Sequence record: OR805293.1 | Length of the DNA stretch: 64,000 bases | Direction: 5' to 3' (one strand) | Shown: positions 17,008 through 51,378 of the stretch, one piece after another | Numbering within the stretch: the first letter of the stretch is position 1 | How the letters are laid out: every line of letters begins with the position of its first letter | Made by a program: the position numbers and the translations under genes | Notes under the pieces: model-generated | What the model was told of the DNA's origin: nothing | Database searches by the model: none | The model's input: only the letters and a program-made list of their open reading frames with translations

Positions 17008-17340
17008 ATGAATAATTATTCTAATGATACAGATATTCTAAAATGGATAAAGCGTAACAATAGAAAAAATGCACGTCTAATTTCATATATAGACGGAATA
17101 TATAATATTGTTTATTTCGATGGCGGAAAAGCAAGAGTTGGCATAGTAAAAGACAATATGCACTGCAGATACGGAATACATAGTCGTGGATCTATGTATT
17201 CGAAAGATATAATGAGCCTGTGGCAATCTAGTACAGGTTCGTGTTCGCCCGATGATGTAAAGATTATGCAAGATTATCTAGACGATAAATGCATACTTCC
17301 GGAATTTGATTTTTCTCAGATTAAAAATTTAAAATGGTAA
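17008..17340 (+). CDS. hypothetical phage protein
   Basis: 110-aa ORF with globular composition. Confidence 0.75.
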   Translation: MNNYSNDTDILKWIKRNNRKNARLISYIDGIYNIVYFDGGKARVGIVKDNMHCRYGIHSRGSMYSKDIMSLWQSSTGSCSPDDVKIMQDYLDDKCILPEFDFSQIKNLKW

Positions 17341-17363
17341 ATAATATAACAATATAGTTTTAT

Positions 17364-17440
17364 CGCAGGGTATGCAAGAGGTCTAAGCAGAAAGGCTCAT
17401 AACCTTTTTATCGTGGGTTCGAATCCCACCCCTGCAACCA
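17364..17440 (+). tRNA. tRNA-fMet-like initiator (CAT)
   Basis: C1:A72 mismatch; acceptor CGCAGGG/CCCTGCA; CCA. Confidence 0.85.
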
Positions 17441-17449
17441 GTTTTATAT

Positions 17450-17526
17450 CTAGGCATAGCTCAAGTAGGTAGAGCACTTGCTTTGGGAGCAAGAGGTTGG
17501 GGATTCGAGGTCTCCTGCCTAGACCA
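17450..17526 (+). tRNA. tRNA-Pro (TGG)
   Basis: Cloverleaf; CCA. Confidence 0.95.
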
Positions 17527-17535
17527 ATTTACTAT

Positions 17536-17608
17536 GCAGTCCTAGCTCAATTGGTAGAGCACTGTCCTTCCAAGTCAGATGTTACGGGTTCGAGTCCCGT
17601 GGGCTGCT
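17536..17608 (+). tRNA. tRNA-Gly (TCC), CCA not encoded
   Basis: Cloverleaf; discriminator T followed by CAA. Confidence 0.92.
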
Positions 17609-18337
17609 CAATATTCTAATATAATCGATGATTCGTGTAGTGGATAAATATGGAAGTATAGTTATACCATCTAATATAACGGTGCTGGAAATACAGGCAT
17701 ACACAACAGAGTTAGTGTATGTAAGAAAATCTCATTGTTTATGTTTATACATTCCTAATATAGGAAATTATGCTTTATGGTTTTTAGACAGATAGGATAA
17801 AAATATAAATCGATATTGTTCTGTTTAAGGAACCAACATTAAATGGCAGGTTGCATATTTAGACTCGATTTGTCTATTTTTCGTGAAAATGTATATAGTA
17901 TTTCTAGGTTGTCTTATACAAAATCTATATGTGTTTCAATAAAAACTAAACCGACAAGCAATAGAAGACAATTAGAAATATATGTTGTAGATAAAACAAC
18001 TGATTTTTTAGTTGCATGCAAATATTTTTAGCTTATCTATTTTGACTTGCCTTTAAAATAAATAACCATTATATATTTGATATAACAACTATTCTAAATA
18101 GAAATAAAACCATAAATACACATAATAACGGTGTGGATTTATGGAAAACATATTTAGGATATCTATTAATGCTAACGAAGGTATTATACGAATATCCCCT
18201 ACTTACTTTTTTAATGGTGTTTTTTATTCAAAGCATTTGAATATTTTTATAATAGATCCCGACGGATATCTAATAAGAAAAATATATACTTGTAGTACAT
18301 TCTTATGATGATTTCTTTTAAATATACAAAATAGCAT

Positions 18338-18366
18338 TTGACACAAGTATAATTATTTCGTATAAT
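18338..18366 (+). promoter_or_regulatory. consensus sigma70 promoter
   Basis: TTGACA-17-TATAAT. Confidence 0.9.
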
Positions 18367-18397
18367 AAGTGTATAAAATAACAAAAGAGAATTTTAA

Positions 18398-18757
18398 ATG
18401 ATTTCCAAAATTCAAATTGTATACGGAATATATCTTCCTACTGCTGATGCAAAAATTATATACGAAGACTCGGAATACGAATCTAATAAAATAAATAAAA
18501 ATATTAGATTATTTGCAAATGATGCATATTTAGAAGATAAGATTTTAGAAAATAAGGAATTCGAAGATAATCCCTATGTTCCGCACTTTTATGGTATTTT
18601 TTGTAAAGAATTCGATAATGACCAAAGTGCATACTTATATAATGTTCCCAAATCTTTTATAGATGAATATAATAATGTAGCTCCAGCTATTTTGGCTAGA
18701 CTCGGTTATTTAGATAGAGTTGCAGGAAAACAACATTGTAGAATAATCTACGAATAG
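18398..18757 (+). CDS. hypothetical protein
   Basis: ORF downstream of consensus promoter. Confidence 0.75.
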   Translation: MISKIQIVYGIYLPTADAKIIYEDSEYESNKINKNIRLFANDAYLEDKILENKEFEDNPYVPHFYGIFCKEFDNDQSAYLYNVPKSFIDEYNNVAPAILARLGYLDRVAGKQHCRIIYE

Positions 18758-18771
18758 AATTAACTAGTTTT

Positions 18772-18861
18772 GGAGAGGTGATAGAGTCTGGTTTATTATA
18801 CTAGTCTTGAAAACTAGCGGATCGAAAGGTCCCGTGGGTTCGAATCCCACCCTCTCCGCCA
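18772..18861 (+). tRNA. tRNA-Ser (TGA)
   Basis: Cloverleaf with long variable arm; CCA. Confidence 0.96.
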
Positions 18862-18866
18862 AATAT

Positions 18867-18956
18867 AGATACTTGACCGAGTGGCTTAAGGTGCTTCCCT
18901 GCTAAGGAAGTGAGTTTGAAAAAGCTCCGTAGGTTCGAATCCTACAGTATCTGCCA
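18867..18956 (+). tRNA. tRNA-Ser (GCT)
   Basis: Cloverleaf with long variable arm; CCA. Confidence 0.96.
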
Positions 18957-28620: not shown

Positions 28621-28914
28621 ATGGATATTATTCTTTTTATATCAAATAATACATACTATATAATATCAACGAGTAATAGCACATTCTTATTATACAGATT
28701 TGATCAAAAATGTATCTATGTTGCAACAAAAAATCTTAATTCACATCCGGTAGTGATAGACGACGGAAGTAATGGCTGGGGGACAATATATGAGATTCCC
28801 GCACTAGTTCAGTTTTACACAGATATTTTTAAATTTTCTGTGCATCACGAATTAATTCAAATATATGTGCTCACAAAAGTAGGTCAATTTTTCTCTAAGA
28901 TTGTTACTTACTAA
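28621..28914 (+). CDS. array small protein
   Basis: MDIILFISNNT start. Confidence 0.6.
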   Translation: MDIILFISNNTYYIISTSNSTFLLYRFDQKCIYVATKNLNSHPVVIDDGSNGWGTIYEIPALVQFYTDIFKFSVHHELIQIYVLTKVGQFFSKIVTY

Positions 28915-29236
28915 TATAATTGTACAATACATAGGTAATTTGATGGACAATATATTTTATATTTCGTACGAGATAGCTAGTTGCCGGTATTCTAGTCCAA
29001 CTACATTTCAATTAATTAATAAACACAATAGAGAATTTTATGCAATACGTTTGGCTGCAGGATACCCAAGCGACATTTTCGATTTTGATTGGAAACAAAA
29101 AATCTTATTAACGTCTAAATATTGTAATAAGCTTTTATTTCTTATTAGTAGAGAAAAGATACAGGTAACTACCAAGTTAAGGATATTTTATTGCCTTAGT
29201 AACGTATCTGCTAAATCGGATCAAGTTACACTATGA
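28901..29236 (+). CDS. array small protein
   Basis: ORF track. Confidence 0.5.
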   Translation: MLLTNIIVQYIGNLMDNIFYISYEIASCRYSSPTTFQLINKHNREFYAIRLAAGYPSDIFDFDWKQKILLTSKYCNKLLFLISREKIQVTTKLRIFYCLSNVSAKSDQVTL

Positions 29237-29457
29237 ATATCATACCATTAATTTTAATTAGTGTATACTAGTTATTGTGACACTATTAAATATGTCAATT
29301 AGATAAAATAAATTATTAATGAAAAATCTATTTCCTACCGGATGCATATTTAATATATTGGTATTATCTTATCACACAGATACAATATATGCTGCATGTT
29401 ACTCAGATTGTCGTGTTATTGCACTAAACAGTTATTATACATACTATATACCTTTAA

Positions 29458-29718
29458 ATGACTAAATTAATACTTACAATTTCTATTAATACCAAACAGA
29501 TAGCATTATTAAACGATGTTGTGCATTTTCGAAATTATAATAAAGCGGTATACTTTATAAATTTTTTATCTAAATCTAAGTCATTAATTATTGTGGACGA
29601 GTTAATAACAGATAGTTTTATTATCTTTTATATAAGTGAAAATTGTTCCGAAATTTATGTCACCCCTAGATATGCTTTTATATGTAATTTCGATGGGGTT
29701 GGGTTTTTTAGATCATAA
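29458..29718 (+). CDS. array small protein
   Basis: LILTISINT start. Confidence 0.55.
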   Translation: MTKLILTISINTKQIALLNDVVHFRNYNKAVYFINFLSKSKSLIIVDELITDSFIIFYISENCSEIYVTPRYAFICNFDGVGFFRS

Positions 29719-29749
29719 CTAGTTGTGTTAATTAGGATAACTATACTTA

Positions 29750-30043
29750 ATGAAATATGATTTTATATTACATATGAGTAATAACACAAATTGTATTATA
29801 TTCGACACAAGTATTACCTTTGTTGACAACAAAGGTATATTCTTTTATAAAATAATACCAATACACTTGCATGGTATGTGTAATTTTCCTTATATAGATA
29901 ACAGTTGGTCAAACTATATTTCATTACCTATAATTATACAATATTATACAAATAAACTGGTATATTTACCGTCTATTATACTTTTTCGTCAAAATAAATC
30001 TAATATATCAGCAGATACTGTATTTCGTACAAATATGTTATGA
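29750..30043 (+). CDS. array small protein
   Basis: DFILHMSNNT start. Confidence 0.6.
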   Translation: MKYDFILHMSNNTNCIIFDTSITFVDNKGIFFYKIIPIHLHGMCNFPYIDNSWSNYISLPIIIQYYTNKLVYLPSIILFRQNKSNISADTVFRTNML

Positions 30044-30321
30044 ACGATGAATTAATACTATTGTTAAGTAAAGAGACTTATATAACTTCATTTTCTCATA
30101 ACTGTGTAGACTTGTTCAGCGCTGCTGGAATTATATTTTATAGCATATCTATACCATACATGGGTTCCCGTGCTGCTAGCAGAATACATCATTTATATTT
30201 GTGTGTGTTTACACTATCTCCTTTTATAATACAATCATTTTGTCGTGTAATATTCGATAATAAGTATACAATTGGCATAGCACATAATGGCACACTTATA
30301 TGGAAAGGTCTTTACCAATAA
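30040..30321 (+). CDS. array small protein
   Basis: ELILLLSKET start. Confidence 0.6.
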   Translation: MNDELILLLSKETYITSFSHNCVDLFSAAGIIFYSISIPYMGSRAASRIHHLYLCVFTLSPFIIQSFCRVIFDNKYTIGIAHNGTLIWKGLYQ

Positions 30322-30390
30322 CTTTTTCAGTTGCTATAACATGCACAATGTGCAATAATAAAAAACAATGTGCAATTGTGAATAAAATAC

Positions 30391-30696
30391 ATGAATATTA
30401 TCATTAACATTCAAGCATCAACATCCGAAATCTTCTTTGATACAGACTGTATCTCGTTAATGACTAGCTTAAGCGGTTATGTTCTTTCGATAAACCGAAG
30501 AACAGGAAAAGGCGCAGTTGTACTTCATAACATAAAGTTAGATTCCATATATCGTATTCTACTATTACAGCACACAACTACATCACTTGTTGTATGGGGT
30601 GCTATAGACATTAAAGTATCATTTAAAGACATAGCCGATGAATACATTTTCCTTGCTATAGGAAGAAGATATTATCACGGCGAATGGTTAAAATAA
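30391..30696 (+). CDS. array small protein
   Basis: MNIIINIQAST start; ILLLQHTT in second half. Confidence 0.65.
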   Translation: MNIIINIQASTSEIFFDTDCISLMTSLSGYVLSINRRTGKGAVVLHNIKLDSIYRILLLQHTTTSLVVWGAIDIKVSFKDIADEYIFLAIGRRYYHGEWLK

Positions 30697-30965
30697 TTCT
30701 GACTATGCATAAAATTTATTATGACGAAATTTTAGAAATATCTAATAAAGCTAGATTAATTGTAATTTATTCTGGCATATGTTCTATATACGCAAAACCT
30801 TCTGTTTATTATAATGTAAATTATAACTTTTATAGTAATCCATTTAGTTTGTGGAATAGGGCAGTATTTATAGCATCTAAACAATGCGGGTACATAGCAT
30901 TCACTGATAACCGGGTGCGTATATTAACTGATAAAAAAATAATGTGGTATTATAATTATCTATAA
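30684..30965 (+). CDS. array small protein
   Basis: ORF track. Confidence 0.5.
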   Translation: MVKIILTMHKIYYDEILEISNKARLIVIYSGICSIYAKPSVYYNVNYNFYSNPFSLWNRAVFIASKQCGYIAFTDNRVRILTDKKIMWYYNYL

Positions 30966-30980
30966 GGTATAGATCGAAAA

Positions 30981-31289
30981 ATGGTATATAAAATACCGAA
31001 CGACAAGTGTATGTTGTTAATATTTCTGAGTAGTATAGCTGATACTATATCTATAGAAATCAGTTTTAGAAAAAGAATTAGAAAATGTTTGTACACACTA
31101 AAAATATACAAAGGTGATAACAATTGCATATTTATAAATGGCGTACTATTATTTAAAAAAGTTATATGTAACGATATGATAATTCCTATTTTGATACAAT
31201 CAGTCACAAGATCAATATCAATGCATAACGACTTCTTAGAAGTATTTTCTAACAAATATTATTTGACGTTATTTAGAAAAATGACATAG
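30981..31289 (+). CDS. array small protein
   Basis: ILIQSVT in second half. Confidence 0.5.
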   Translation: MVYKIPNDKCMLLIFLSSIADTISIEISFRKRIRKCLYTLKIYKGDNNCIFINGVLLFKKVICNDMIIPILIQSVTRSISMHNDFLEVFSNKYYLTLFRKMT

Positions 31290-31309
31290 TCTTAAATGGG
31301 CAAAAATGC

Positions 31310-31561
31310 ATGATTGTTATACTTCTTTCACACTTTACACATGAACTAAATGCACAGTTTAATGAATTAGAACTTACTGTGTATGGTAATAGATTAGCGC
31401 AAATATATCCAACAGCATTTATAGATACTAACATTCTATGGCATTATATGAGTAAACCTAATTTCTTACTATTTTATATTTCTAATAATGCAAAAACGAT
31501 AAAATTAAACCATTCGCCCCGAATATTATTATATAACTCTCCCATACCTCACTATATTTAA
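31310..31561 (+). CDS. array small protein
   Basis: ILLSHFT start; FYISNNA in second half. Confidence 0.55.
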   Translation: MIVILLSHFTHELNAQFNELELTVYGNRLAQIYPTAFIDTNILWHYMSKPNFLLFYISNNAKTIKLNHSPRILLYNSPIPHYI

Positions 31562-31593
31562 AAAGATAAGTAGCTGAACTATCATTTAAACAG

Positions 31594-31950
31594 TTGTTGT
31601 ACAGAAACTCTTTTAATGAGCAGGTTAATGTCCATCTAAACCCTATGTGCAACCTACCATTTATTATATCAAGTAATTCCCACAAACTAATCTACGGACA
31701 GTATTTTAACAATACAAGAGGTCCAGGCATATACATTGCTAATATAAATGGATTTGTGTTTCTATACTCAGTTGTTACTATTTCTAATTTTCAAATATGT
31801 TTTAGTATGCTTAACGAAATAGATCCTTTGTATTTGCAATACAAATGCGATTCAATAAAAACAATAAACACACTTATGTATTATAGACTAAATGTCAATT
31901 CATTACTTAATACAATGTTATGTAAAGAATATTATGAATTTAATACTTGA
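31594..31950 (+). CDS. array small protein
   Basis: LYLQYKC in second half. Confidence 0.5.
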   Translation: MLYRNSFNEQVNVHLNPMCNLPFIISSNSHKLIYGQYFNNTRGPGIYIANINGFVFLYSVVTISNFQICFSMLNEIDPLYLQYKCDSIKTINTLMYYRLNVNSLLNTMLCKEYYEFNT

Positions 31951-32218
31951 ATTATTAAGAAACACTAGTAAAATCATACCGCTTGATGGTCTAAATGCTG
32001 CTAGATTTATTCTTGTAAATACCCATTATATAAAAATAGCATCTTTTTGTTTATCATTTTCTACATGGACCTGCCAGACATTTTTAAGTATAAACCAGTT
32101 TCAAATGTCAGAATCTACGTTAGTTATCATATCTAATAAAATAAAGAAGATCAAAAGAGTAAAAAAATCATACGCTTTAGTTTTTGACGAATCATATATT
32201 CTGTTGAAAATCAAATGA
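31934..32218 (+). CDS. array small protein
   Basis: MNLILELLRNT start (ATG 31934). Confidence 0.55.
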   Translation: MNLILELLRNTSKIIPLDGLNAARFILVNTHYIKIASFCLSFSTWTCQTFLSINQFQMSESTLVIISNKIKKIKRVKKSYALVFDESYILLKIK

Positions 32219-32469
32219 TAATACATATCTCACATTTAACACATATAATAAGTGTATATTCTAAATATATAATCGTTACTAATAAAGCTAATGAAATTAT
32301 ACTTTGCAATTACATATATAACCAAACTAAAATTTACATTAGCAAATTATTACTAAATATCGATTTAATCTGTTATATTCAACATAACACAAAAACTATT
32401 AGTTATCCCATTGTACATAGCCATTTTCTAGCGTATCCATATCTTTGCAATAATGCCTTGGTTGTATAA
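32215..32469 (+). CDS. array small protein
   Basis: ICYIQHNT in second half. Confidence 0.6.
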   Translation: MIIHISHLTHIISVYSKYIIVTNKANEIILCNYIYNQTKIYISKLLLNIDLICYIQHNTKTISYPIVHSHFLAYPYLCNNALVV

Positions 32470-32471
32470 TT

Positions 32472-32759
32472 ATGGATTTTATTTTCCTACTACAACATAA
32501 CACTTCTATTATATTATTTAATAATATATCATATGGTAGTATAGAATTATACACAAAAGACGAAGTTCCAGTATTAGACATAGAAATATCAAATTCTATG
32601 TACATATATCAAGGTAATTTTAATGACAAAACTGCAATACTCCATCTACAGCAAAATACACACCAGATACAAATAGATATAGATATTATAAAAATGAGAA
32701 ACATGTACTATAAAGACATTTATTATATTGTATTACATGGATTATATGGATTATATTAA
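32472..32759 (+). CDS. array small protein (recent duplicate A)
   Basis: MDFIFLLQHNT ... ILHLQQNT. Confidence 0.7.
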   Translation: MDFIFLLQHNTSIILFNNISYGSIELYTKDEVPVLDIEISNSMYIYQGNFNDKTAILHLQQNTHQIQIDIDIIKMRNMYYKDIYYIVLHGLYGLY

Positions 32760-32825
32760 ACTTATCTCCGCAGAAGTAAATCAAATATATCCATATCTTG
32801 TCAACAATACTTTGGTTATATAATT

Positions 32826-33107
32826 ATGGATTTTATTTTCCTACTACAACATAACACTTCTATTATATTATATCGTAATAGTATTATAGAATTATACACA
32901 GAAGACGAAATGCCAGTAATAGACATAGATATAACAAATTCTATGTTCATATATCTAGGTATTTTTAATGACAAAACTGCAATACTCTATCTACAACAAA
33001 ATACACACACGATACATAAAGAATCATCAAATTCTTATTATATGATAAGAATGAGAAATATGTACTATAAAAACATTTATTATATTATAACACATGGATT
33101 ATATTAA
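32826..33107 (+). CDS. array small protein (recent duplicate B)
   Basis: MDFIFLLQHNT ... ILYLQQNT. Confidence 0.7.
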   Translation: MDFIFLLQHNTSIILYRNSIIELYTEDEMPVIDIDITNSMFIYLGIFNDKTAILYLQQNTHTIHKESSNSYYMIRMRNMYYKNIYYIITHGLY

Positions 33108-33378
33108 ACTTATCTCTTCAGAAGTAAATCAAATTAAAAAATCCACCCACCCCGGTGGCACCCGCAACGGCTTAACACTATATAACGTACATGACCAACC
33201 TATAATAGAAATAAAGATCCAAAAAATAATATCCCGTGCATATGTGCGTGCAAACTACGATAAGTTGTGTAACGAAATTTGCATTCTTTATATACAAAGT
33301 CAAACAACTTCAATATCTACCACACGGAACTCACTAGTAATCTTTACTTCCCACTATATAGTTCACTCTATCATATGA
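33094..33378 (+). CDS. array small protein
   Basis: ILYIQSQT in second half. Confidence 0.65.
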   Translation: MDYIKLISSEVNQIKKSTHPGGTRNGLTLYNVHDQPIIEIKIQKIISRAYVRANYDKLCNEICILYIQSQTTSISTTRNSLVIFTSHYIVHSII

Positions 33379-33647
33379 ACCTAATCCCCGCACTGCAACA
33401 TAAAACTAGATATATATCCCAATTTGATACTACTTATCGTTTAATTAACTCAGATAGAAAATGCTTTTATCTTATAACACGCAAGAACAAAAAGACCACA
33501 GTAGACATAGACTATAATATCTTCAATGATATTTTCGGTATATTACATTTACAGTCTAAAACACATATACTAAGACGTTCATATAACGTAATACAAGTAC
33601 ATGATGTATATTCTAATTTAACACATTTTGCCATAGCTCGGCAATAA
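33375..33647 (+). CDS. array small protein
   Basis: MNLIPALQHKT ... GILHLQSKT (ATG 33375). Confidence 0.65.
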   Translation: MNLIPALQHKTRYISQFDTTYRLINSDRKCFYLITRKNKKTTVDIDYNIFNDIFGILHLQSKTHILRRSYNVIQVHDVYSNLTHFAIARQ

Positions 33648-33653
33648 CCATAA

Positions 33654-33935
33654 ATGAAATTTATTATAACATTACAATCATACACAACTACAATACAGTT
33701 TCTAACTAATGATTTTATATTATATTCTGATAGAAATAGATTATTAGAATTAGGTATATACAATAACAAATTCAACTGTTACATACATATCAATAATTTT
33801 AATAATAACAATATAATCATGTGTTATCTTCAGCATATAATTTATACAATACACATTCATCCCTTTGTTTTATCGATGTGTAATAGTAATTGGTTATCAG
33901 TTAATACAAAATGTTATTCAAGAAGACTTTACTAA
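33654..33935 (+). CDS. array small protein
   Basis: MKFIITLQSYT ... CYLQH. Confidence 0.65.
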   Translation: MKFIITLQSYTTTIQFLTNDFILYSDRNRLLELGIYNNKFNCYIHINNFNNNNIIMCYLQHIIYTIHIHPFVLSMCNSNWLSVNTKCYSRRLY

Positions 33936-33974
33936 AGCAATGAAGATGAATGATAGAAATCACTACACTATAAC

Positions 33975-34370
33975 TAATGAGTGATAATACTCTAATAGAT
34001 AGAAACTATAGTGTACAAATAATGAGTGATAATACTAATAGAAGCTATAGTATACAAATAATGAGTGATACCAATAGATGGTGAATAATGAGTGATACTG
34101 AGTGATACTAATAAGATAGTGATAGTGTACAAATAATGAGTGAATTATATAGTACATATTTCGGTGAATACTGATATAATATCAATAGATAGCTATAGTG
34201 TACAAATAATGAATGATAATACTAATAGATAGTGATACTGACAGATAGCTATAGTGTACAAATAATGAGTGATAATACTGATAGATACTAATACTAATAC
34301 TGATACTAATAGATAGCTATAGTGTACAAATAATGATTGAATTATGTAGTACATATTTCGGTGAACCCTA
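33975..34370 (+). repeat. iteron-like modular direct-repeat array (candidate replication origin)
   Basis: CTATAGTGTACAAATAATGA-type copies at 34006, 34045, 34120, 34193, 34249, 34317; TGAATTATRTAGTACATATTTCGGTGAA at 34141 and 34338. Confidence 0.85.
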
Positions 34371-34394
34371 ACATCACCAAAGAAAGAAGGACCA

Positions 34395-34600
34395 AAATTT
34401 TGGAAATCTTGCTCTATAGGTCCCATTCATTTTCTTCCCAGTTACATTTATATTCTTTCCATTTCTAACCATTTTTATAGATTTTTTTTGGAAAAATCCG
34501 TTTTCTGCTATATAGGTCCCTCCTTATAAAATATAAGTTCTTTTTCAATAAAAAATATTTTTTTTTGAAAATTTCCAATTCTTGCTATATAGGCCGGTTT
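34395..34600 (+). repeat. three spaced TGCT[AC]TATAGG[TC]C motifs after T/A tracts
   Basis: Copies at 34408, 34505, 34581. Confidence 0.7.
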
Positions 34601-34743
34601 CATTATATATTCCCGTTTGCATAACATATACGGAATATAGTATGCTATACGTATATAAACCGTGACTCTAGACAACTCACTTACTGTACGCTTGTTAATA
34701 TAATTCCATTTCGTAGTATAACGTATATACAGGAAAACTAGTT

Positions 34744-35016
34744 ATGGATCTGATACTATTTCTTCAACATAGTACTGTAGAGATGGACTATAGTGAATGG
34801 TACATTCGTCTTAACAACAAGAATGAAAAGCATATAGCTATGATTACAGATAACGGTCTTAGACTGTATTATAGAAATATCAATGGCTTACTTGGTATTC
34901 TTCACTTACAATACTGTAATTATGATTTTTTATTCAGGTATATGGGCAGTTATATTTCTTTTACATTTGTTAATAATAATAGGTTTGTACATGAAACATA
35001 TGCTGATTTGAAATAA
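34744..35016 (+). CDS. array small protein
   Basis: MDLILFLQHST ... GILHLQYC. Confidence 0.7.
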   Translation: MDLILFLQHSTVEMDYSEWYIRLNNKNEKHIAMITDNGLRLYYRNINGLLGILHLQYCNYDFLFRYMGSYISFTFVNNNRFVHETYADLK

Positions 35017-35019
35017 TAT

Positions 35020-35325
35020 ATGGATTTCATACTATTACTTCAATCTCATTGCAATGAGATTGTATATACCAAACAAATCATTGATATGCTCAATGCGCAT
35101 AATAGGCAGTTCGTATATGGAATTACGTTGCCTATGGGAAGAAAACATGTATCATATGATGCATATTGTTTGTATAATAATTTATGTGATGTGATAGGAT
35201 TATTGCATATGCAATCTATTCTATCATTAATAGAAGTTAAACATTTAAAATCATTTTCTGGTAAAACAGATATTATTGTTAATATGGTGTTTGCTAACGG
35301 TTTTCTTCAATATGCTATATTCTAA
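35020..35325 (+). CDS. array small protein
   Basis: MDFILLLQSHC ... GLLHMQS. Confidence 0.7.
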   Translation: MDFILLLQSHCNEIVYTKQIIDMLNAHNRQFVYGITLPMGRKHVSYDAYCLYNNLCDVIGLLHMQSILSLIEVKHLKSFSGKTDIIVNMVFANGFLQYAIF

Positions 35326-35341
35326 TAGTTGTGTCTAATAC

Positions 35342-35626
35342 ATGGACTTAATATTATTATTTCAGTCTCGTTGTTGTAAGATTTGGTATTCAGATTATAT
35401 TATAGATATGATCGACTATAGTGATTATACTATAGTATCATTACTACGCCCGCCGAATGGGCGTATGTATGCCTATTGTTCGTGTAACAATATAAACAAC
35501 GAAATTAGTATAATGCATTTGCAGAATAGCATACATTCATTACAAATAAGTTATAGTACCCGTTCTATAATGTGTCGTATGACTAATGTGTATGAAGATC
35601 TAATTCAATATATTAGTATACTTTAG
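35342..35626 (+). CDS. array small protein
   Basis: MDLILLFQSRC ... IMHLQNS. Confidence 0.7.
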   Translation: MDLILLFQSRCCKIWYSDYIIDMIDYSDYTIVSLLRPPNGRMYAYCSCNNINNEISIMHLQNSIHSLQISYSTRSIMCRMTNVYEDLIQYISIL

Positions 35627-35628
35627 TA

Positions 35629-35904
35629 ATGTATTTTATCTTGTTTATACAGAAATTGTGTTGTTCGATTAGAAGGGCTTCACATGGATTTGATATTTTT
35701 GATACAAATGAAGTAGCATATTCATTAATAGATCATCATGGTTTCAGTATGAAACATTTCGTTTCATACTCTGTTATAAATGATGTAATAGGAATTATAC
35801 ATTTACAAGTGCATACAAATAAGTTATATTTTCTTCATGAAAAACATCAAATGGATATGATTTGTTTTCTAGATAGTAAAGGCGGTCATTTTTTTAGTTT
35901 GTAG
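35629..35904 (+). CDS. array small protein
   Basis: MYFILFIQ ... GIIHLQVHT. Confidence 0.65.
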   Translation: MYFILFIQKLCCSIRRASHGFDIFDTNEVAYSLIDHHGFSMKHFVSYSVINDVIGIIHLQVHTNKLYFLHEKHQMDMICFLDSKGGHFFSL

Positions 35905-35916
35905 AGGGCAGAATTT

Positions 35917-36180
35917 GTGCTATTAATATTAATGCTTCAGCGTAATGTTGAATGGATTCTTTATATTGAATACGAAATTCGACTTGTTCTGCCCGATTAT
36001 AACACGTTATATTGTTTTCCAATTTATAAACAGAAAATTAATGGGTATCTAAATTGCTTTGTTATTAATGACATTGTAGGTATGTTTTATTTACAGTACA
36101 ATTGTAATGTTATATCATTTGATAGATTTAATGTTTTTATGATACTAAACCGCAATGACATAATAATTTATGGCCGGTGA
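35917..36180 (+). CDS. array small protein
   Basis: LILMLQRN ... GMFYLQYNC. Confidence 0.6.
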   Translation: MLLILMLQRNVEWILYIEYEIRLVLPDYNTLYCFPIYKQKINGYLNCFVINDIVGMFYLQYNCNVISFDRFNVFMILNRNDIIIYGR

Positions 36181-36476
36181 CTAGTATGGATATTATATTA
36201 ATCCTTAGCAATGAAGTTATAAGAATACAAGGTTGTTTTTATGATATAGAAACTTTACAAATAAGGTTCTTCAATAAATACGACTCAATATATTTTTGTA
36301 ATAAAATGGGAGGATTTGTTAACTATAAAACATTTCCTAATGAACTACTAAGTATAATTCATTTGCAGCAGAATACACACAGGTTAATAACACACAGTAA
36401 ATGTATATTTTTTGATAGTGTGGATTTTATTTCTATTCACTGGGAGACTTTGTTTGACACAAACGAATATGTATAA
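36177..36476 (+). CDS. array small protein
   Basis: MDIILILSNE ... IIHLQQNT. Confidence 0.65.
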   Translation: MTSMDIILILSNEVIRIQGCFYDIETLQIRFFNKYDSIYFCNKMGGFVNYKTFPNELLSIIHLQQNTHRLITHSKCIFFDSVDFISIHWETLFDTNEYV

Positions 36477-36720
36477 TGATATGAATTATATATTACTAAT
36501 TAGTAACCAGTCTAAATATATTTCGTTGAAGGCACTTGGATTAACTGTAAACACACGTGAACCAAGGTTAACTCATTATATTATATTTTAAATATGAACG
36601 AAGAATATGATATATTATATTTGTCTAATAATACTATGCAAATAACATTTCACTTTTCAGTATATTGTTTTTATGATAAAACTCGTAGTATTATATATTG
36701 TCAATAAGACAGAAATATAA

Positions 36721-37035
36721 ATGGATTTAATATTAACACTTCAACATAAAACTGTGCTAATATCTCAGTTTAGTGCATTATTTGTATTTCAAAATATAAA
36801 CAGTGATACTATATTTTGTTTGGATATAGGTAAACATGTATATTATTTTGAAATAATATTCAGGTTATATAATAATAAGAATGGCATGGTGTATTTGCAA
36901 CATGCCATTAATTCTATTAAGTTTACCCTTAGTTTATATTATCATACAATTCATGGATATTCTAGTATGCCATCTATATATATGTATGATAAAAAATATG
37001 CTATTGTACACGTACCATATGTTAGGAATACTTAA
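36721..37035 (+). CDS. array small protein
   Basis: MDLILTLQHKT ... MVYLQHA. Confidence 0.7.
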   Translation: MDLILTLQHKTVLISQFSALFVFQNINSDTIFCLDIGKHVYYFEIIFRLYNNKNGMVYLQHAINSIKFTLSLYYHTIHGYSSMPSIYMYDKKYAIVHVPYVRNT

Positions 37036-37334
37036 TGGATCTTATATTATACATTCAGTACAGTGCTCATAAAATAGAAACTGTTTATAAATCATATCTA
37101 TTTTATAGTAATAACTATTCACTTTATTACAGACTGTCTGTATATAAGAGATTATTGGTACCATCGGGTAGTGAATCATATGCAAGGGCTTCGGCTGAAT
37201 ATTCTGCTATTACAGACAAAATAGGAATTATACACTTACAATCGAAAACACACGCAATATTATTTGTTATAGACAGTATGTGCATTCACGACAAATCGTA
37301 TCAAACACTCCATTATATTATACTAAGGTCATAA
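37035..37334 (+). CDS. array small protein
   Basis: MDLILYIQYS ... GIIHLQSKT. Confidence 0.7.
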   Translation: MDLILYIQYSAHKIETVYKSYLFYSNNYSLYYRLSVYKRLLVPSGSESYARASAEYSAITDKIGIIHLQSKTHAILFVIDSMCIHDKSYQTLHYIILRS

Positions 37335-41323: not shown

Positions 41324-41740
41324 GCTTACTAAACAGTTACTTGTTAAGTAAGTTAAAAAGTCTGTAACAGTGATGTTACAGGATACACAGGCAAATACGG
41401 TTGGAAGATGCTGTGTAAAGAACAAATATCCAGCTCATTCCTAGGCATTATAGCCTACACAATATACTTGAATGGGCATAAAAACTTCCAAAGAACCTTC
41501 GAAATTTTCTCATAGGATAGTGTATTAGAAGGAATGCACTATCAGGAAGCTGTAGGTGATGGTTGCTATCCCAGACAGTCCTTTCTAAAATACTTTAATA
41601 TGATATAAAGTTCTATGCAACCGTATACATGCTGTAAGATATTAGATTACACCATGTATTAAACGTAAAAGCAAAACCTTCAGTTAGTAATCTCGCAGTG
41701 AAGGGGGTAGGTGAGTGCTACCCAAACTCAACAAACAACT
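41324..41740 (+). ncRNA. candidate structured ncRNA or long 5' leader (ncRNA-1)
   Basis: No ORF >=60 aa; promoter; multiple stems (see findings). Confidence 0.5.
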
Positions 41741-41766
41741 AATGGTCTAGAAAAGGTATAGTATAC

Positions 41767-42174
41767 ATGCAACATACTCACATTCGTTTCTACAACGAAG
41801 AAACTCAACAGATCGATAACCGCCGTGGCGCTACTGTTGCCTGGGAAACCGCCGGCAACAAGATCCGTATTTCCGTAGCAGCATGTTCGGAAATGGATAA
41901 CTTCAACCGCAAGACCGGACGTGAACATGCTGCTAGCCGTCTCGAAAGTGGCGACTACATCGAGTTTAACGGCACCGAACTTCTTAATGCACAGATGTCT
42001 TCTGTAAGTCATGTGCAGTCTGAAGGTCTCGTTCGTGCTATGTGCTTCTTGCTAGCACAAGGCAAAGGCGATCTATATTACCCGGCAAGCGAAGGTCAGC
42101 TTCGCAGCGAAGCCGAGTGCAATAGCTACAACGCTCTCGAGTACCTGAAACACCAGATGGGCATTCATCAGTAA
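41767..42174 (+). CDS. GC-rich hypothetical phage protein
   Basis: AAGGT RBS; motif AACSEMDNFNRKTGR; host-like codons. Confidence 0.85.
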   Translation: MQHTHIRFYNEETQQIDNRRGATVAWETAGNKIRISVAACSEMDNFNRKTGREHAASRLESGDYIEFNGTELLNAQMSSVSHVQSEGLVRAMCFLLAQGKGDLYYPASEGQLRSEAECNSYNALEYLKHQMGIHQ

Positions 42175-42187
42175 GTATTCGGCCATT

Positions 42188-42230
42188 CGGAATTGCGATT
42201 TAGGTTTTGGAATTCTAAATCGCAATTCCG
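42188..42230. terminator. 16-bp perfect hairpin
   Basis: CGGAATTGCGATTTAG-11 nt-CTAAATCGCAATTCCG. Confidence 0.55.
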
Positions 42231-42415
42231 GTTTCCAAATTCAATTTTAGGCACAAACTCGGATCCGCATTTGCATTTTGCATTTACATTTTGTGTTCTG
42301 AGTGTATATGCAAAATGCAATCGCGCATGTTGTCGATGCATTGGCTAATCTTTTATTTTTGATAGTTTAGAAAAGATTAAGAACAGAAACTATCTGTAAA
42401 TTAATAAAAATAACA

Positions 42416-42444
42416 TTTACATTACATACACATATGCATATACT
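42416..42444 (+). promoter_or_regulatory. sigma70-like promoter
   Basis: TTTACA-17-TATACT. Confidence 0.75.
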
Positions 42445-42450
42445 ATATAC

Positions 42451-42728
42451 AAGTTATGCGCTGTTGCATACGTAAATACCTCCTATGTTGTTTAGATATG
42501 TCGATTCTGGTATAACCAGATAGACCTAAGGATGATGCTAGTGATTCCTTAGTATTGTATATTCTAGCTGAGTATAAAGAGTAAGGGGCTTTATACAAAT
42601 AACAATTCCCTAGGCAAGATATACCGCTCCGTTGTGCTGACGAGCATAATTTGCCCAGATACAGAGCACGTGACTGGTCTGAGGAGCATTTATATCAGAA
42701 AGGCAGACTTATGTTTGCCTTTCTTTTT
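42451..42728 (+). ncRNA. candidate ~275-nt structured ncRNA (ncRNA-2)
   Basis: Bounded by promoter and terminator; no credible ORF; several stems and a possible pseudoknot. Confidence 0.65.
42697..42728 (+). terminator. intrinsic terminator
   Basis: AGAAAGGCAGAC-ttat-GTTTGCCTTTCT followed by TTTT. Confidence 0.85.
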
Positions 42729-42742
42729 GAGCAAATATTCTC

Positions 42743-42786
42743 TTATTCATTTCCTTATTCATTTCCTTATTCATTTCCTTATTCAT
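42743..42786 (+). repeat. 12-bp tandem repeat TTATTCATTTCC x3.7
   Basis: Direct reading. Confidence 0.9.
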
Positions 42787-42790
42787 CTCT

Positions 42791-42930
42791 ATTTCATTTG
42801 TTATTGCAAATAAGAATTAGTCTTATTTGCGTTTGTAATTTCATTTGTTATTGCAAATAAGAATTAGTCTTATTTGCGTTTGCAACGAAAAAGAATATGC
42901 AAATAATAACTAATCTTATTTGCATTTGCA
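42791..42930. promoter_or_regulatory. cluster of three palindromic boxes (GCAAATAAGA-N5-TCTTATTTGC)
   Basis: 45-bp perfect direct repeat 42791-42835/42838-42882, third box at 42898-42924. Confidence 0.75.
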
Positions 42931-43095
42931 CTGCCTATTATATGGATTGGTAGCATACTTGGAAATGGATAGTAAATAAGTAGTTGATTTGTTTATAAAT
43001 TTTAATTCTATATCGTACTGATTGACCTTGCTATATATAGCTCGCGCGCGTATACAAGATGGTAAAAAATAATTTAAAAATATTTTAAAAAATGC

Positions 43096-43219
43096 TTGAC
43101 TTTCCATTACTACGACCTTAAAGTGCGAACTGTAGACGCAGTGTGTAGAGCGCTACATAGTAAGCAACGCAGAAAGTAAACAAAAAATGCTTGACGCAAT
43201 GCAAACTAGGCTCTACACT
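43096..43219 (+). promoter_or_regulatory. tandem sigma70 promoters
   Basis: TTGACT-17-TAAAGT (43096-43124) and TTGACG-17-TACACT (43191-43219), both preceded by AAAAAATGC. Confidence 0.75.
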
Positions 43220-43302
43220 GTATACAAGCTTAAGGGGTAAGTGCCCCGAAAGTGTAGTAAGTAAACAACATAATCCTTCCATCAGCTACAGAGGTATACA
43301 AC

Positions 43303-44007
43303 ATGTCCGTACATATCACTCGTCAACGTACCGACAAACAGCACGTCCTGGCACTGGCAATCAACGGCGTGGTCATCGGCCAGACTATGGCTACTTACAC
43401 CACCCCGAGCAAGCGCACCTGGTCGGCGACCGCTGAAGTCGAACTGGCAGACGGCACCGTCGTACAGTTCGAGCAGAAAGAAGTGTTCAGCGCGATCCGC
43501 ATCACCCGCGAAATCGAGCAGGCGCTCGACGGCAAGGAACTGGCGGCCAAGTACACCCCGGAACCGAAAGTTCCCGGGCAGAAGGGTCCGAAACCGCTCA
43601 CCGACGAAAGCCGGCTCAGCAACGCGATCGCGATCGTCAAGGCGGCCATCACCCACACCGGCTTCGACGAAGCTACCCTGGTGTTCGACGGGGTCGACAA
43701 GGCCAACTTCGAGCAGAACAGCACCTCCGTCGGCAACAAGCTGCGTCGCCTGGGCTTCGTCTTCGAACTCGGCGCCGGCAAGGCGAATAGCGGCAAGGGC
43801 TTCCTGATCAACCGCAAAGCGCAGGCCGAGGCAGAAGCTGCCGAACGCAAGGCCAAGCGCGATGCCGAGAAGAAGGAACGCGAAGAAAAAGCGGCGGCTG
43901 CCAAGCGCGAAGCTGACGAACGCAAGGCCAAGCGCGAAGCCGAACGCGCTGAAAAGGTCGCTGAAAAGAACGCAGCGATCGCCGGGGCAGCGCAGGAAAG
44001 CAAGTAA
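43303..44007 (+). CDS. very GC-rich protein with Ala/Lys/Glu/Arg-rich C-terminal tail; paralog of 62563..63018
   Basis: GAGGT RBS; host-like codons; shared NGVV.GQ...VQF.Q..VFSAIRI domain. Confidence 0.9.
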   Translation: MSVHITRQRTDKQHVLALAINGVVIGQTMATYTTPSKRTWSATAEVELADGTVVQFEQKEVFSAIRITREIEQALDGKELAAKYTPEPKVPGQKGPKPLTDESRLSNAIAIVKAAITHTGFDEATLVFDGVDKANFEQNSTSVGNKLRRLGFVFELGAGKANSGKGFLINRKAQAEAEAAERKAKRDAEKKEREEKAAAAKREADERKAKREAERAEKVAEKNAAIAGAAQESK

Positions 44008-44022
44008 TTGCCCAACTGCGCC

Positions 44023-44052
44023 GAAAGGGGAGCAAATTGCTCCCCTTTCTTC
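44023..44052 (+). terminator. intrinsic terminator
   Basis: GAAAGGGGAGCA-aat-TGCTCCCCTTTC. Confidence 0.85.
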
Positions 44053-44620
44053 ATGACCATATAATCTATATACTACTGTGTCTTTAACTATATTTTCTAT
44101 ATCAGCTAGTTTGTATGCAATAACTTGGTATTCTATGCCAGCGACACAATGCTGTTATATAGACATAATAACACGCGACGCTGATATTTTTATAACCTAT
44201 CCATTTTATAATAACATACTTGTATCTAAAATTATTTCTAATACAATACCTGTAGGAAGTTATGAACACTATATTAGAGATATGTCGTGGAATAAGAAAT
44301 GATCATATAACAGTCAATAATTTTACATATGACTACTATCTAGAGGTAAACACACCTGTGTTTTCTTTAATGATAATTATTCCAACAGTTCCTATATTAG
44401 ACAATACTTGCATTACTTTTATAAAAAAGTATTAATATGAATATATTCTTTATATCAAACAGTCTATCTAATATACTATATCATAAAGCTTATGATATAC
44501 ATATGATAGATATTAATATTAATAATTCTACTTCTATTTGGCTTACATATTCTTTCAATATTGCTAAGGTATCATTTAAATATATTATCTAATTCATTTT
44601 CTTATTGTATGAATTGTAAT

Positions 44621-44689
44621 TGCAAATTACTCTTATTTGTAATTGCATATAAACAATCAGTTGCTATTAAAAGTATTTGCTGTTAATAT
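44621..44689 (+). promoter_or_regulatory. palindromic box plus sigma70 promoter
   Basis: TGCAAATTACTCTTATTTG, then TTGCTA-17-TAATAT (44661-44689). Confidence 0.6.
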
Positions 44690-44973
44690 ATTATATAACA
44701 GTGCAATTGATATTTTAAAATACAGTGTGCAATACATCTTACATGTATTAAAATTTGTGTGTTACTTATTTTGCATTAATGATTAATATACCTCTCATAC
44801 AGTACAAAACTCATACTATAAACAATTTGTTCGGGCGATCGTTCTCAAAATGTATACAAGTGCGAGATGACAATCTAATTTTACTTGTTAGTTTTTATAT
44901 AGAAGGTTCTAAATATAGAAAATTTGTATATAACAACCAATGCCTTGCCAATGCCTTGAAGGGATTTTAGTAT

Positions 44974-45240
44974 ATGCAAACAACAATCGTTAATGCCCTA
45001 AAATCTATTAATGTAAAGTATTCGGATATATTTTACACAAATGGTAATTTGTGTAATACCGTTACAATACGAAATATTCGCAAAAATGGTAAATTAGATT
45101 CGGCAGAACAAATCAATGTAGAATCAGTTGTGAGCAATTATTTGATTCAAAAAGATTTAAATTTGCCCTTTTCTATTCAGTGGGCAAATAATGATTGTTG
45201 CGAAGAGTATACTACACTTATTCTCTTCTTCAGAAAATAG
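44974..45240 (+). CDS. hypothetical protein
   Basis: ORF track. Confidence 0.65.
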   Translation: MQTTIVNALKSINVKYSDIFYTNGNLCNTVTIRNIRKNGKLDSAEQINVESVVSNYLIQKDLNLPFSIQWANNDCCEEYTTLILFFRK

Positions 45241-48997: not shown

Positions 48998-49006
48998 TGC
49001 ATATTT

Positions 49007-49117
49007 AGAAAGGGAATTATAATTCCCTTTCTTTTTGGATCTATATTAGCAAATGCTAATTAATCTTATTTGCACAAATTTAATCCTATTGTGTTTTCTA
49101 TTTTGAAGTGCTACATT
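49007..49117 (+). promoter_or_regulatory. terminator + palindromic box + promoter module
   Basis: Hairpin 49007-49036; box 49049-49075; TTGTGT-17-TACATT (49089-49117) with TG. Confidence 0.65.
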
Positions 49118-49155
49118 ACATGTAGTTGCATAAAACTATATACAGGAGAAATGAT

Positions 49156-49704
49156 ATGTGGGATATCAAAGAAGGGGATGATATCGAAGTCGAAGCAGTT
49201 ATGGATGAACGAAGCTATGAGTGGACCGGCAAGTTACGTATCATTCAGTATCGGACCCTTCAATCAGCTCAGTGGCGTGTTATTATCAATATAGTAGAAT
49301 TTTGGAGTCATTCTACTGAAAGTATACTGAACGAACTTGGTATAGAAGCTAAACACATCACTAAAGGATATGCTACACTTAGTATGGTTCGTTTCCCGGA
49401 TGTTGATTACCTATTTAGTGTAACACCCGATAATGCAGATTATGTAACTGTTAACCACAGTGCAGTAGATATTTCTGACAGTTGGTTTGTTGCAAAAAAC
49501 ATAAAAGCAGTTATGTATCATTTGGGATCTGAAATTCAGCTCACTCCGTGGTTTGTGCGTAAAGATAGTAGTGAGTCAAATTTCAATTGTATTGATCGAT
49601 TAGTAGCTCTAGTGAAAGAGAATACTGATGTTGACACGTATCAGTACATTAAAGTAGGTTGTCCTGAGGACAAGTCATTTTACTTTGCGTGGATAGACAA
49701 ATAA
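49156..49704 (+). CDS. hypothetical protein
   Basis: AGGAG RBS, ATG 49156. Confidence 0.75.
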   Translation: MWDIKEGDDIEVEAVMDERSYEWTGKLRIIQYRTLQSAQWRVIINIVEFWSHSTESILNELGIEAKHITKGYATLSMVRFPDVDYLFSVTPDNADYVTVNHSAVDISDSWFVAKNIKAVMYHLGSEIQLTPWFVRKDSSESNFNCIDRLVALVKENTDVDTYQYIKVGCPEDKSFYFAWIDK

Positions 49705-49830
49705 TTCGTTTGCTATACGTACTAATACGTTGTATACTGTTAGTACGTATAGTAGAAGTAACATATAACGTTTTGAGTTAAGGGAACCATAACATAAAAA
49801 AGAATTTGAATTGAGGTGCCCTACGAGTAG

Positions 49831-50325
49831 GTGTTCGAGATGGAGCAAATAGTGAATATGCGAGAAGTGACATTTCTTTCCGCAGTGGATGCCAGCAAGA
49901 TCGAGACGCCGAGCAACGTCATCAGCATCGGCAGCAAGGGTGATTGGTATGCCTTTGCCTGCGATCACAAGCGCGTTCTGCGGCTGGAGTTTGATGACGT
50001 AGACGGATACGTGGGAAGCGATGGCTTTCGAGTGTTCAGCCACATTGACGCCAAGCAGATCCACGACTTCGTGAACGAGTGTGGTGATGAACCGATCATT
50101 GTTCACTGCCAAGCAGGCATGAGCCGATCCGCTGCGGTTGCCAAGTTCCTAGCTGACAAGCGCGGCTACACCTTGAACCTGTCGAAGCCTTGCTTAGGCA
50201 CTACACAATTCTACAACCGCCACGTCTACGGAACGTTGAACCTCAACAACGCCGAAAGCATGAGCGCCTATTACGCAGAGATGGAGCTAGCCGACCGGAC
50301 GCGTGGCCATCCAAAGGAGTCCTGA
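49831..50325 (+). CDS. protein-tyrosine/dual-specificity phosphatase-like protein
   Basis: Active-site CX5R motif IIVHCQAGMSRSAAVA; upstream LEFDD acid loop. Confidence 0.88.
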   Translation: MFEMEQIVNMREVTFLSAVDASKIETPSNVISIGSKGDWYAFACDHKRVLRLEFDDVDGYVGSDGFRVFSHIDAKQIHDFVNECGDEPIIVHCQAGMSRSAAVAKFLADKRGYTLNLSKPCLGTTQFYNRHVYGTLNLNNAESMSAYYAEMELADRTRGHPKES

Positions 50326-50327
50326 TC

Positions 50328-50627
50328 ATGCCTGACATGAGAGAAGAGTTTGAAGCCGCAATCTTTGCGGAAGTGAATGAACAGCGGGCTGCTGAAGGTG
50401 AATTTGTCCTTCAGCATCCAGAAGGGCTATTTGCCCGCGATGACGATGGCTCCTACTTGATCCGTTGGGTCAAGAGCGCATGGTGGGCCTGGCAAGCCAG
50501 CCGCGCAGCTCTGAGAGTGGAGTTGCCGAAACCTCACCCTGCATTTGAGTACGCACCTAGAGCCAAGGTTTTCAATATAACTGACGTTGAGGTAGCCCTC
50601 CAGCAAGCCGGAATCGAGGTGAAGTGA
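50328..50627 (+). CDS. hypothetical protein, temperate-phage-like
   Basis: AAGGAG RBS, ATG 50328; MREEFEA...AWWAWQASRAAL pattern. Confidence 0.75.
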   Translation: MPDMREEFEAAIFAEVNEQRAAEGEFVLQHPEGLFARDDDGSYLIRWVKSAWWAWQASRAALRVELPKPHPAFEYAPRAKVFNITDVEVALQQAGIEVK

Positions 50628-50774
50628 ATGAGAACGCCCATCTTCATCGGCGGATCAATTGGCATAGGAATCGCCTATCTGATGAATCCTGAATATCCCG
50701 CTATCGCGCTTGCAATGGTGTTTAGCGCGGGTACCTCATTGTTCATTCACTATCTATCTGAGGTATGGCCATGA
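50628..50774 (+). CDS. small membrane protein (48 aa, not in ORF track)
   Basis: GAGGT RBS; coupled at both ends; two hydrophobic segments. Confidence 0.55.
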   Translation: MRTPIFIGGSIGIGIAYLMNPEYPAIALAMVFSAGTSLFIHYLSEVWP

Positions 50775-50845
50775 CCGACCACGCAGAGCTGCGGAGGCTG
50801 GCTAAAGAAGTGATCCGAATTGAACGAAATGAGGATGCAGCATGA
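50771..50845 (+). pseudogene. 24-aa Ead/Ea22-like N-terminal remnant
   Basis: MTDHAELRRLAKEV...; ATGA-coupled on both sides. Confidence 0.45.
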
Positions 50846-51378
50846 GCATTGACTGGACCAAGGCACCAGAGGGTGCGACGCACTACCAACCGGAATCACG
50901 CGGCTTCCATGCGGCATGGTTCCGACTTCAAGGGGGGAAGGCTCGCGAAATGTGGGTCGTGAGACCCAGCCGCGCGCTTGAGCACATCATCGATCCGACT
51001 GTCTTCGACGAGAGCATGCAGAACCTGATCGCCCGCCCCGTAGAACCTGCCACCTGGAACGGCCAGGGCCTGCCGCCGGTTGGCCTGATGGTGGAGTGGA
51101 AGGCAGGCCTTGATCACGACTGGCAGCGCGTAACCGTGCTTGCCTACGCCAATGGCGACGCGTGGTTTCAGCCCGAGGATGGCCCGTCTTTCATCGTCGG
51201 CAACCCGGCAAACTTCAGGCGTATCCGCACCCCCGAGCAGTTGGCCGCCGAGGAGCGGGAAAAGGCGATTAATCAGATGATTTCTGATGCTGGATACGTA
51301 GATCCGAAGATTGGCACATTTGTGGCTATGCGCAATCTCTACGACGCCGGCTACCGGCGCCGGGAGGAAGGGAAATGA
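50842..51378 (+). CDS. hypothetical phage protein
   Basis: MSIDWTKAPEGATHY; W.G.GLPPVG; LYDAGYR patterns. Confidence 0.8.
   Translation: MSIDWTKAPEGATHYQPESRGFHAAWFRLQGGKAREMWVVRPSRALEHIIDPTVFDESMQNLIARPVEPATWNGQGLPPVGLMVEWKAGLDHDWQRVTVLAYANGDAWFQPEDGPSFIVGNPANFRRIRTPEQLAAEEREKAINQMISDAGYVDPKIGTFVAMRNLYDAGYRRREEGK

Follow-up and report, generated by a model that had tools for sequence, protein, structure and literature searches.

A hypervariable repeat array and three conserved motifs as the probable left boundary of the long direct terminal repeat of Pseudomonas phage Deifobo

In phage T7, the secondary origins phiOL and phiOR adjoin the terminal repeat, and packaging at the junction requires local replication. 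The T7 junction (SRR - terminal repeat - SRL) is a direct terminal repeat (DTR) with arrays of degenerate short repeats on both outer sides and a closely spaced cluster of elements at its left end, and packaging requires site-specific cuts at the two boundaries together with duplication of the repeat. Here we describe a locus of similar layout in a 64,000-nt stretch of sequence record OR805293.1 (hereafter the window), which is 100% identical to Pseudomonas phage Deifobo (genus Wroclawvirus, 288,357 bp), a PA5oct-like member of the T4-related jumbo myoviruses. Around window position 34,400 an array of degenerate direct repeats is followed by three related motifs. We consider it probable that array and motifs mark the left boundary of a long DTR, and with it the place at which cleavage of the concatemer yields the left end of the chromosome to be packaged.

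The comparisons with known systems are made from general knowledge and not by sequence. By analogy, the closest counterparts would be the T7 junction in layout, P1 pac and lambda cosB in logic, and T5, SPO1 and the jumbo phage XacN1 (cited in PMC7318152) in genome organization. The locus differs from T7 in that the repeat is ~40 kb long with more than 100 genes rather than 160 bp, the three motifs lie inside the repeat rather than outside it, there is no promoter for a phage RNA polymerase, and the phage is a T4-related jumbo myovirus whereas T7 is a podovirus. With T5, SPO1 and XacN1 it shares fixed physical ends and a multi-kilobase DTR that carries early genes, often small ones, whose function is unknown. 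The likeness to P1 pac (four plus three hexamers around the cut) and lambda cosB (R3-R2-R1 and a bending site) lies in several copies of a short motif close to the cut (~200-400 bp, to one side or to both), in A/T tracts between the motifs that suit bending, and in the strong conservation of the site. However, P1 packages by the headful and lambda has cohesive ends, whereas the present phage has a long DTR; the left-hand repeats vary in number, which the P1 hexamers do not; and binding of a small terminase is here putative.

The same locus is found in ten related genomes (PA5oct, deposited twice, MIJ3, Paride, Cassandra, Ettore, PAC2, Callisto, 30-2 and 30-3) at 82-92% identity to Deifobo. Positions below are those of the window, i.e., the record position minus 124,000, unless a record position is named. 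The end and the start of the PA5oct record (286783|1) are contiguous in Deifobo at 34374|34375, and this PA5oct terminus coincides with the last base of the array. In the PA5oct record, positions 1-39,080 carry the annotation of a double-coverage terminal repeat, position 1 having been assigned as its start from PhageTerm and coverage. The PA5oct paper gives long DTRs of an estimated 39,080 bases, includes a PhageTerm report and counts many early genes among the 105 of the repeat (PMC7318152). In the DNA sequencing run X3, which comes from a relative and not from Deifobo itself, an 18.4-kb contig with a depth of 25.9 ends at 34345 and an 8.5-kb contig with a depth of 55.9 starts at 34325, corresponding to a 2.16-fold step at the boundary between array and DTR. 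The variants in X3 differ from those in the PA5oct RNA runs, and its indels match MIJ3; X3 is therefore another strain, and its depth supports the boundary partly independently. Fragments of the array have a depth of ~27 in this run, compared with 55.9 inside the DTR, which together with the contigs makes the array single-copy DNA that closes the unique region on its right, with the repeat starting directly after it. Because the junction is invariant, the position of the fixed end can be transferred from PA5oct to Deifobo. The predicted DTR then runs from 34375 past the end of the window to record position ~198,591, a length of ~40.2 kb (40,217 bp), and the predicted virion chromosome measures ~328.6 kb (288,357 bp plus the 40,217-bp repeat). 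An earlier, sequence-only reading of this DNA had proposed a replication origin and named a terminus or packaging site as the alternative; it is the alternative that gains support from the PA5oct terminus, the DTR start at 34374|34375 and the depth step in X3. The features on the left side of the boundary, and the boundary itself, are:

33951..34374, no strand: array of degenerate direct repeats, hypervariable and poor in C on the + strand, outside the DTR and at single-copy depth
34311..34374, no strand: terminal 64-bp repeat unit (repeat family D2), 91-100% identical in the relatives
34374..34375, no strand: predicted left terminus of the virion DNA, where the DTR begins, from homology to PA5oct and the depth step

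The array contains six 20-bp cores with 0-2 mismatches, which begin at 34006, 34045, 34120, 34193, 34249 and 34317, and a search of the whole 288,357-bp genome found no further copy at up to three mismatches. The linkers are assembled from the same submotifs as the cores, and the + strand of 33975-34374 has 36 C to 70 G, so that the six copies, the composite linkers and the shortage of C noted from the sequence alone are all present at their coordinates. The distances from core to core are irregular at 39, 75, 73, 56 and 68 bp, corresponding to 3.7, 7.1, 7.0, 5.3 and 6.5 helical turns. Across the ten phages the number of cores ranges from 3 to 7 and the length of the array from 309 to 533 bp (measured in eight of the ten), and the identity of the array to the relatives is 58-96%. 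The terminal 64-bp unit closes with TTCGGTG (34357-34363) followed by 11 nt. An internal unit at 34114-34177, 197 bp upstream, matches it at 88% and also has TTCGGTG, but departs from it in the final 9 bases ahead of the would-be terminus, and thus looks like a pseudo-junction.

On the right side of the boundary lies a leader with three motifs, L1 to L3:

34375..34743, + strand: non-coding leader of the DTR, 369 bp from the junction to the first ATG
34393..34424, + strand: motif L1, the palindrome CCAAAATTTTGG, then GAAATC, then TTGCTCTATAGGTCC; begins 19 nt inside the DTR
34425..34481, + strand: short repeats of variable copy number that separate L1 from L2, with units like CATTTTCTTCCCAGTTACATT and CCATTTCTAA
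34482..34520, + strand: motif L2, a T8 tract, then GGAAAAATCC, then CTGCTATATAGGTCC (families D6 and D7)
34542..34597, + strand: A/T-tract palindrome (34542-34571) and motif L3 (families I2, D6 and D7)

The leader is better conserved than the genes that follow it, with 97-98% identity in eight relatives compared with 89-93% for the next gene. A 19-bp sequence at the junction and the cores of all three motifs are invariant in all ten genomes. The core of L1 is TGCTCTATAGG at 34410, while L2 and L3 have the core TGCTATATAGG at 34506 and 34583, respectively; for L2 the bases immediately 3' of the invariant core differ in Deifobo. L3 is made up of a T9 tract, then GAAAATTTCC, then TTGCTATATAGGCC. 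In the alignment of the leader, large indels are confined to the variable repeats between L1 and L2, and the spacing of these two motifs ranges from 96 to 137 bp among the relatives, whereas that of L2 and L3 is constant at 74-77 bp. The three TGCT[AC]TATAGG[TC]C motifs that the sequence-only reading had placed after T/A tracts are thus there. Specifically, a T/A tract plus an element resembling TTTTGGAAA stands ahead of each of the three TGCT[AC]TATAGG motifs, and within the genome these three copies alone have that context. The look-alike reported at 43028 does exist, but its context is unlike that of L1-L3, since it directly follows TTGACC. It sits (43020-43045) before a GC-rich run and comes after non-coding DNA (42742-42882) that holds perfect tandem repeats of 12 bp (3.8 copies) and 47 bp (2.0 copies), both 100% identical.

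The right boundary of the repeat mirrors the left, so that the repeat is bracketed on both outer sides by unstable arrays. PA5oct position 39,080 maps to Deifobo record position ~198,591, inside a non-coding stretch of ~600 bp, and the sequence is invariant up to the boundary and for ~45 bp beyond it. Just outside lies a second hypervariable array (record 198,592-198,830), which is G-poor. Its units, of ~17 bp and ~59 bp, contain CTATAGGTTC and vary greatly in copy number from relative to relative, with several extra units in MIJ3. Three TTGACA boxes are found in the 150 bp before this boundary. The two boundaries weakly share TTCGGTG and ATTTTGRAAWT...CTATAGGT. The former stands 11 nt before the left and 10 nt before the right boundary and has 21 + strand copies genome-wide, and ATTTTGRAAWT stands 22 nt after the left and 14 nt after the right boundary, with 6 + strand copies genome-wide. 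Apart from its own locus, the L1 30-mer has its best match in the whole genome 12 nt beyond the right boundary, at 21 of 30 bases. These coincidences suggest one recognition rule for both boundaries, as a lead rather than a result.

We propose that the invariant junction and the leader act together in cis as the site at which concatemer junctions are processed and packaging starts. The packaging machinery (terminase with accessory DNA-bending or DNA-binding proteins) would recognize both, the recognition elements being TTCGGTG, 11 nt, the cut, and then three TTTTGRAAA...CTATAGG elements separated by A/T tracts. A cut at the junction would make the left end, from which packaging would proceed rightward through the unique region and into the next copy of the DTR, and the single copy of the DTR present at each concatemer junction would have to be doubled by DNA synthesis at the site, in line with the proposal for T7. 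The flanking arrays may serve as auxiliary binding sites of low specificity, or may be by-products, prone to slippage, of the cutting and repair that recur at the junction.

What carries the boundary is the position of the terminus from homology and depth, the pattern of conservation, the non-coding status of the leader and the two flanking arrays. Several points weigh against it or against the packaging function. The exact terminal base in Deifobo is carried over from PA5oct, the PA5oct paper itself calls the DTR length 'estimated' (PMC7318152), and the depth of a contig is a mean over that contig, which places the step only to within a few hundred bases. The evidence that the terminase would bind the motifs is indirect, namely the invariance of junction and motifs and the weak sharing between the boundaries. 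The motif coincidences between the two boundaries were found post hoc, and in an unbiased local alignment against the whole genome the likeness of left and right is not exceptional (p ~0.05 for ±60 bp and ~0.23 for ±100 bp). Finally, a packaging site alone does not account for a switch in strand composition at the same position, which is seen in the genes on either side:

31500..33935, + strand: right end of the unique region, genes of ~95-aa proteins, mostly of one paralog family, whose coding strand is unusual in being rich in C and A
34744..37334, + strand: first DTR genes, eight of the ~95-aa paralogs, whose coding strand is rich in G and T

The family straddles the array and has ~20 very divergent + strand members by iterated HMM search, in at least three clusters (12547-13771, 28621-33935 and 34744-37334). 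The genes left of the array are annotated as Deiofobo_0252-0259, the last of them at 33654-33935. Pfam and PHROGs scans of seven of the paralogs returned nothing usable, and one member, PA5oct gp450 (30391-30696), has been highlighted as highly transcribed early (PMC7318152). The base counts given in the sequence-only reading are all exact (33301-33420, 36 C and 8 G; 34741-34800, 14 G and 7 C; 35881-35940, 15 G and 6 C; 36061-36120, 9 G and 4 C), and its claim that paralogs on the same strand have opposite skew on the two sides of the array holds at third codon positions. Six left members have GC skews of -0.10 to -0.33 and third-position GC skews of -0.22 to -0.65, whereas on the right the GC skew is positive in seven of the eight members and the third-position AT skew negative in seven of the eight, with third-position GC skews that are mostly positive. 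For pooled third positions, G:C is 54:116 on the left and 114:78 on the right (P = 2.6e-7), and A:T is 295:287 and 258:390, respectively (P = 1.6e-4). The keto-versus-amino difference (G+T minus A+C, right versus left flank) peaks at 34400 with ~3.5-4 SD, which is rank 1 genome-wide at the 4-kb scale and rank 2 at 1.5 and 2.5 kb. The switch involves no change of coding strand and fades within ~2.5-4 kb. The sole other locus that rivals it (record ~233,600-233,900) is a place where + strand (SbcCD-like) genes meet - strand (RusA-like) genes. The right boundary of the DTR switches in the same direction but less strongly, ranking in the top 1-2.4% of positions genome-wide, and a GC-rich island and - strand genes confound the signal there.

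In the paralog tree the left and right members are interleaved on long branches. The contrast in composition therefore depends on location and not on descent, and its inheritance from two recently duplicated gene clades is ruled out. Resection of 5' ends, or unreplicated 3' tails, as the source of the skew would give the wrong sign, since it would expose the - strand and make the + strand A-rich at the left end. Strong rightward transcription could account for the right flank only, and the published early genes are gp34-105 rather than those adjacent to the motifs. We regard it as unlikely that the DTR boundaries are places where strand-specific DNA synthesis starts in every cycle, from a boundary-linked origin or by nick-primed copying that doubles the one repeat copy of the junction ahead of packaging; the mutational footprint of such a process would be the A/C-rich to G/T-rich switch at the left boundary and its weaker counterpart at the right.

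The sequence-only reading had taken the local switch as the mark of a bidirectional origin. In such an origin the array would be iterons bound by an initiator, the T/A tracts would unwind and forks would leave both ways; a milder form would have synthesis at the DTR boundary, to duplicate the repeat, alongside packaging. This predicts a + strand that is A/C-rich on the left and G/T-rich on the right, and the switch at 34400, which is the first or second sharpest genome-wide, is visible at the third positions of same-strand paralogs, is tied to location by their interleaving in the tree and recurs with the same sign, more weakly, at the right boundary. A/T tracts and palindromes are also present, and ~20-bp direct repeats beside A/T-rich DNA are a likeness to iteron origins such as lambda ori and plasmid oriV. 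The switch itself is real and exceptional, and local initiation of DNA synthesis at the DTR boundary may underlie it. Against a classical origin, skew over the genome as a whole follows gene orientation: the coding strand is purine-rich (~+0.1 for each skew, negative over - strand blocks), and cumulative GC and AT skew over the whole genome track the genes with merely a slight dip here. That cumulative check, which the origin proposal had itself named, gave no meaningful extremum at this locus, and the local switch fades within a few kilobases. In contrast to iteron origins, whose repeats are phased, the spacing of the cores is irregular, and 3-7 cores among ~90% identical phages is not the behavior of functional iterons. 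No DnaA box (TTATCCACA at up to one mismatch) occurs in 33900-34760, there is no initiator-like gene nearby, the neighbors being unannotated ~95-aa proteins with no Pfam or PHROG match, and the replication genes are more than 60 kb away. We judge an origin, in either form, to be improbable.

The three motifs can also be read as tandem early promoters for the host RNA polymerase at the left end, like T7 A1-A3, driving the paralog genes rightward. The A/T tracts would then be UP elements, the -35 element would be TTGCTA or CTGCTA, and the -10 element would follow 16-18 bp downstream. L2 and L3 are readable as (C/T)TGCTA, 16 nt, and TAAAAT or TATATA (both as a loose fit, L2 by eye), the scan picked L3 as TTGCTA, 18 nt, TATATT, UP-like T-runs and A-runs lie immediately upstream of each motif, and the downstream genes are all on the + strand. 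PA5oct relies on the host RNA polymerase, transcribes its Watson strand almost exclusively at early times and has numerous early genes in the DTR (PMC7318152), all of which fits. However, the highly transcribed early genes named in that paper are gp34-gp105 and gp450, and gp2-gp33, the genes that follow the motifs, are not among them; the reported phage promoter consensus is TTGAC and TATAATA (PMC7318152). L1 has no usable -10 element, and in a genome with dozens of promoters the motif occurs at no other locus. A sigma-70 scan of 33600-35100 gave 18 promoter-like sites compared with 15.5 ± 3.8 in shuffled sequence, and no terminators were found there, both scans being uninformative in such AT-rich DNA. 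Two of the three RNA runs have no contig over 34516-34674 and a downstream contig that starts at 34674, which is a weak point since the runs are assembled contigs without direction that give no transcription starts, and holes in them prove nothing. A promoter role is unlikely on balance, and it is compatible with a packaging role rather than exclusive of it. The GenBank records of Deifobo and Paride offer a further label, a CRISPR array, as a repeat_region at 34039-34336 (record 158039-158336) and over the homologous stretch of Paride, from annotation with Pharokka. The 'spacers' would be 19-55 bp long and composed of the repeat's own submotifs, the 525-feature record has no annotated cas gene, the array ends exactly at the chromosome terminus, and an Rfam scan of the whole window brought only 12 tRNAs, and no other family, above threshold. 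We give this label practically no chance of being right; it is an artefact of repeat finding.

The annotation of the same region also contains - strand hypothetical open reading frames (ORFs), Deiofobo_0260-0262, drawn across the array, the chromosome end and the leader, with 0261 and 0262 in the leader. They vary in length between genomes, one of them spans the chromosome end, and another has a polymorphism in the length of a T-run, and for these reasons the three ORFs are probably not genes.

Elsewhere in the window, the 12 tRNA genes cluster at 14543-18956 and include a duplicated Met-Leu pair and three tRNA-Met, with a 79-bp tandem repeat (2.3 copies) upstream, at 14543-14724. Inside the terminal repeat there are GC-rich islands at 49000-54000 (46-55% GC) and 41500-45000 (36-45%), compared with ~30% elsewhere. 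Within the first island, ~49,840-53,020 is 92-95% identical to the temperate Pseudomonas phages PMG1, JBD88b and JBD44, whose annotation over the match includes a Lar-like restriction alleviation protein, and this segment seems to have arrived by horizontal transfer.

The long DTR of PA5oct has already been published, and the kind of feature is known. In the literature searched, we found no description of the fine structure of the boundary (outer arrays, invariant junction and three motifs), of the misannotation or of the switch in composition. Two exact-pattern scans of viral contigs for more distant relatives found none. Ten metagenome matches to the 19-mer junction are due to chance, the contigs having 50-63% GC and neither array nor motifs.

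The analysis corrects the CRISPR miscall and the spurious ORFs across the chromosome end, as well as the impression given by the deposited Deifobo record, which starts at the terminase gene and so conceals the true ends. It places the physical ends for the therapeutically interesting Paride/PA5oct group, whose members kill dormant P. aeruginosa. The junction with its three motifs is a compact candidate for a cis-acting packaging element, which may be of use in engineering, in transduction assays and in termini-aware assembly. How terminal repeats are regenerated is, to our knowledge, still unresolved even for T7, and the unexplained switch in composition at the repeat boundary offers a small lead on this for long terminal repeats. 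If DNA synthesis does start at the boundaries in every cycle, composition alone would reveal how a jumbo phage regenerates a terminal repeat of 40 kb.

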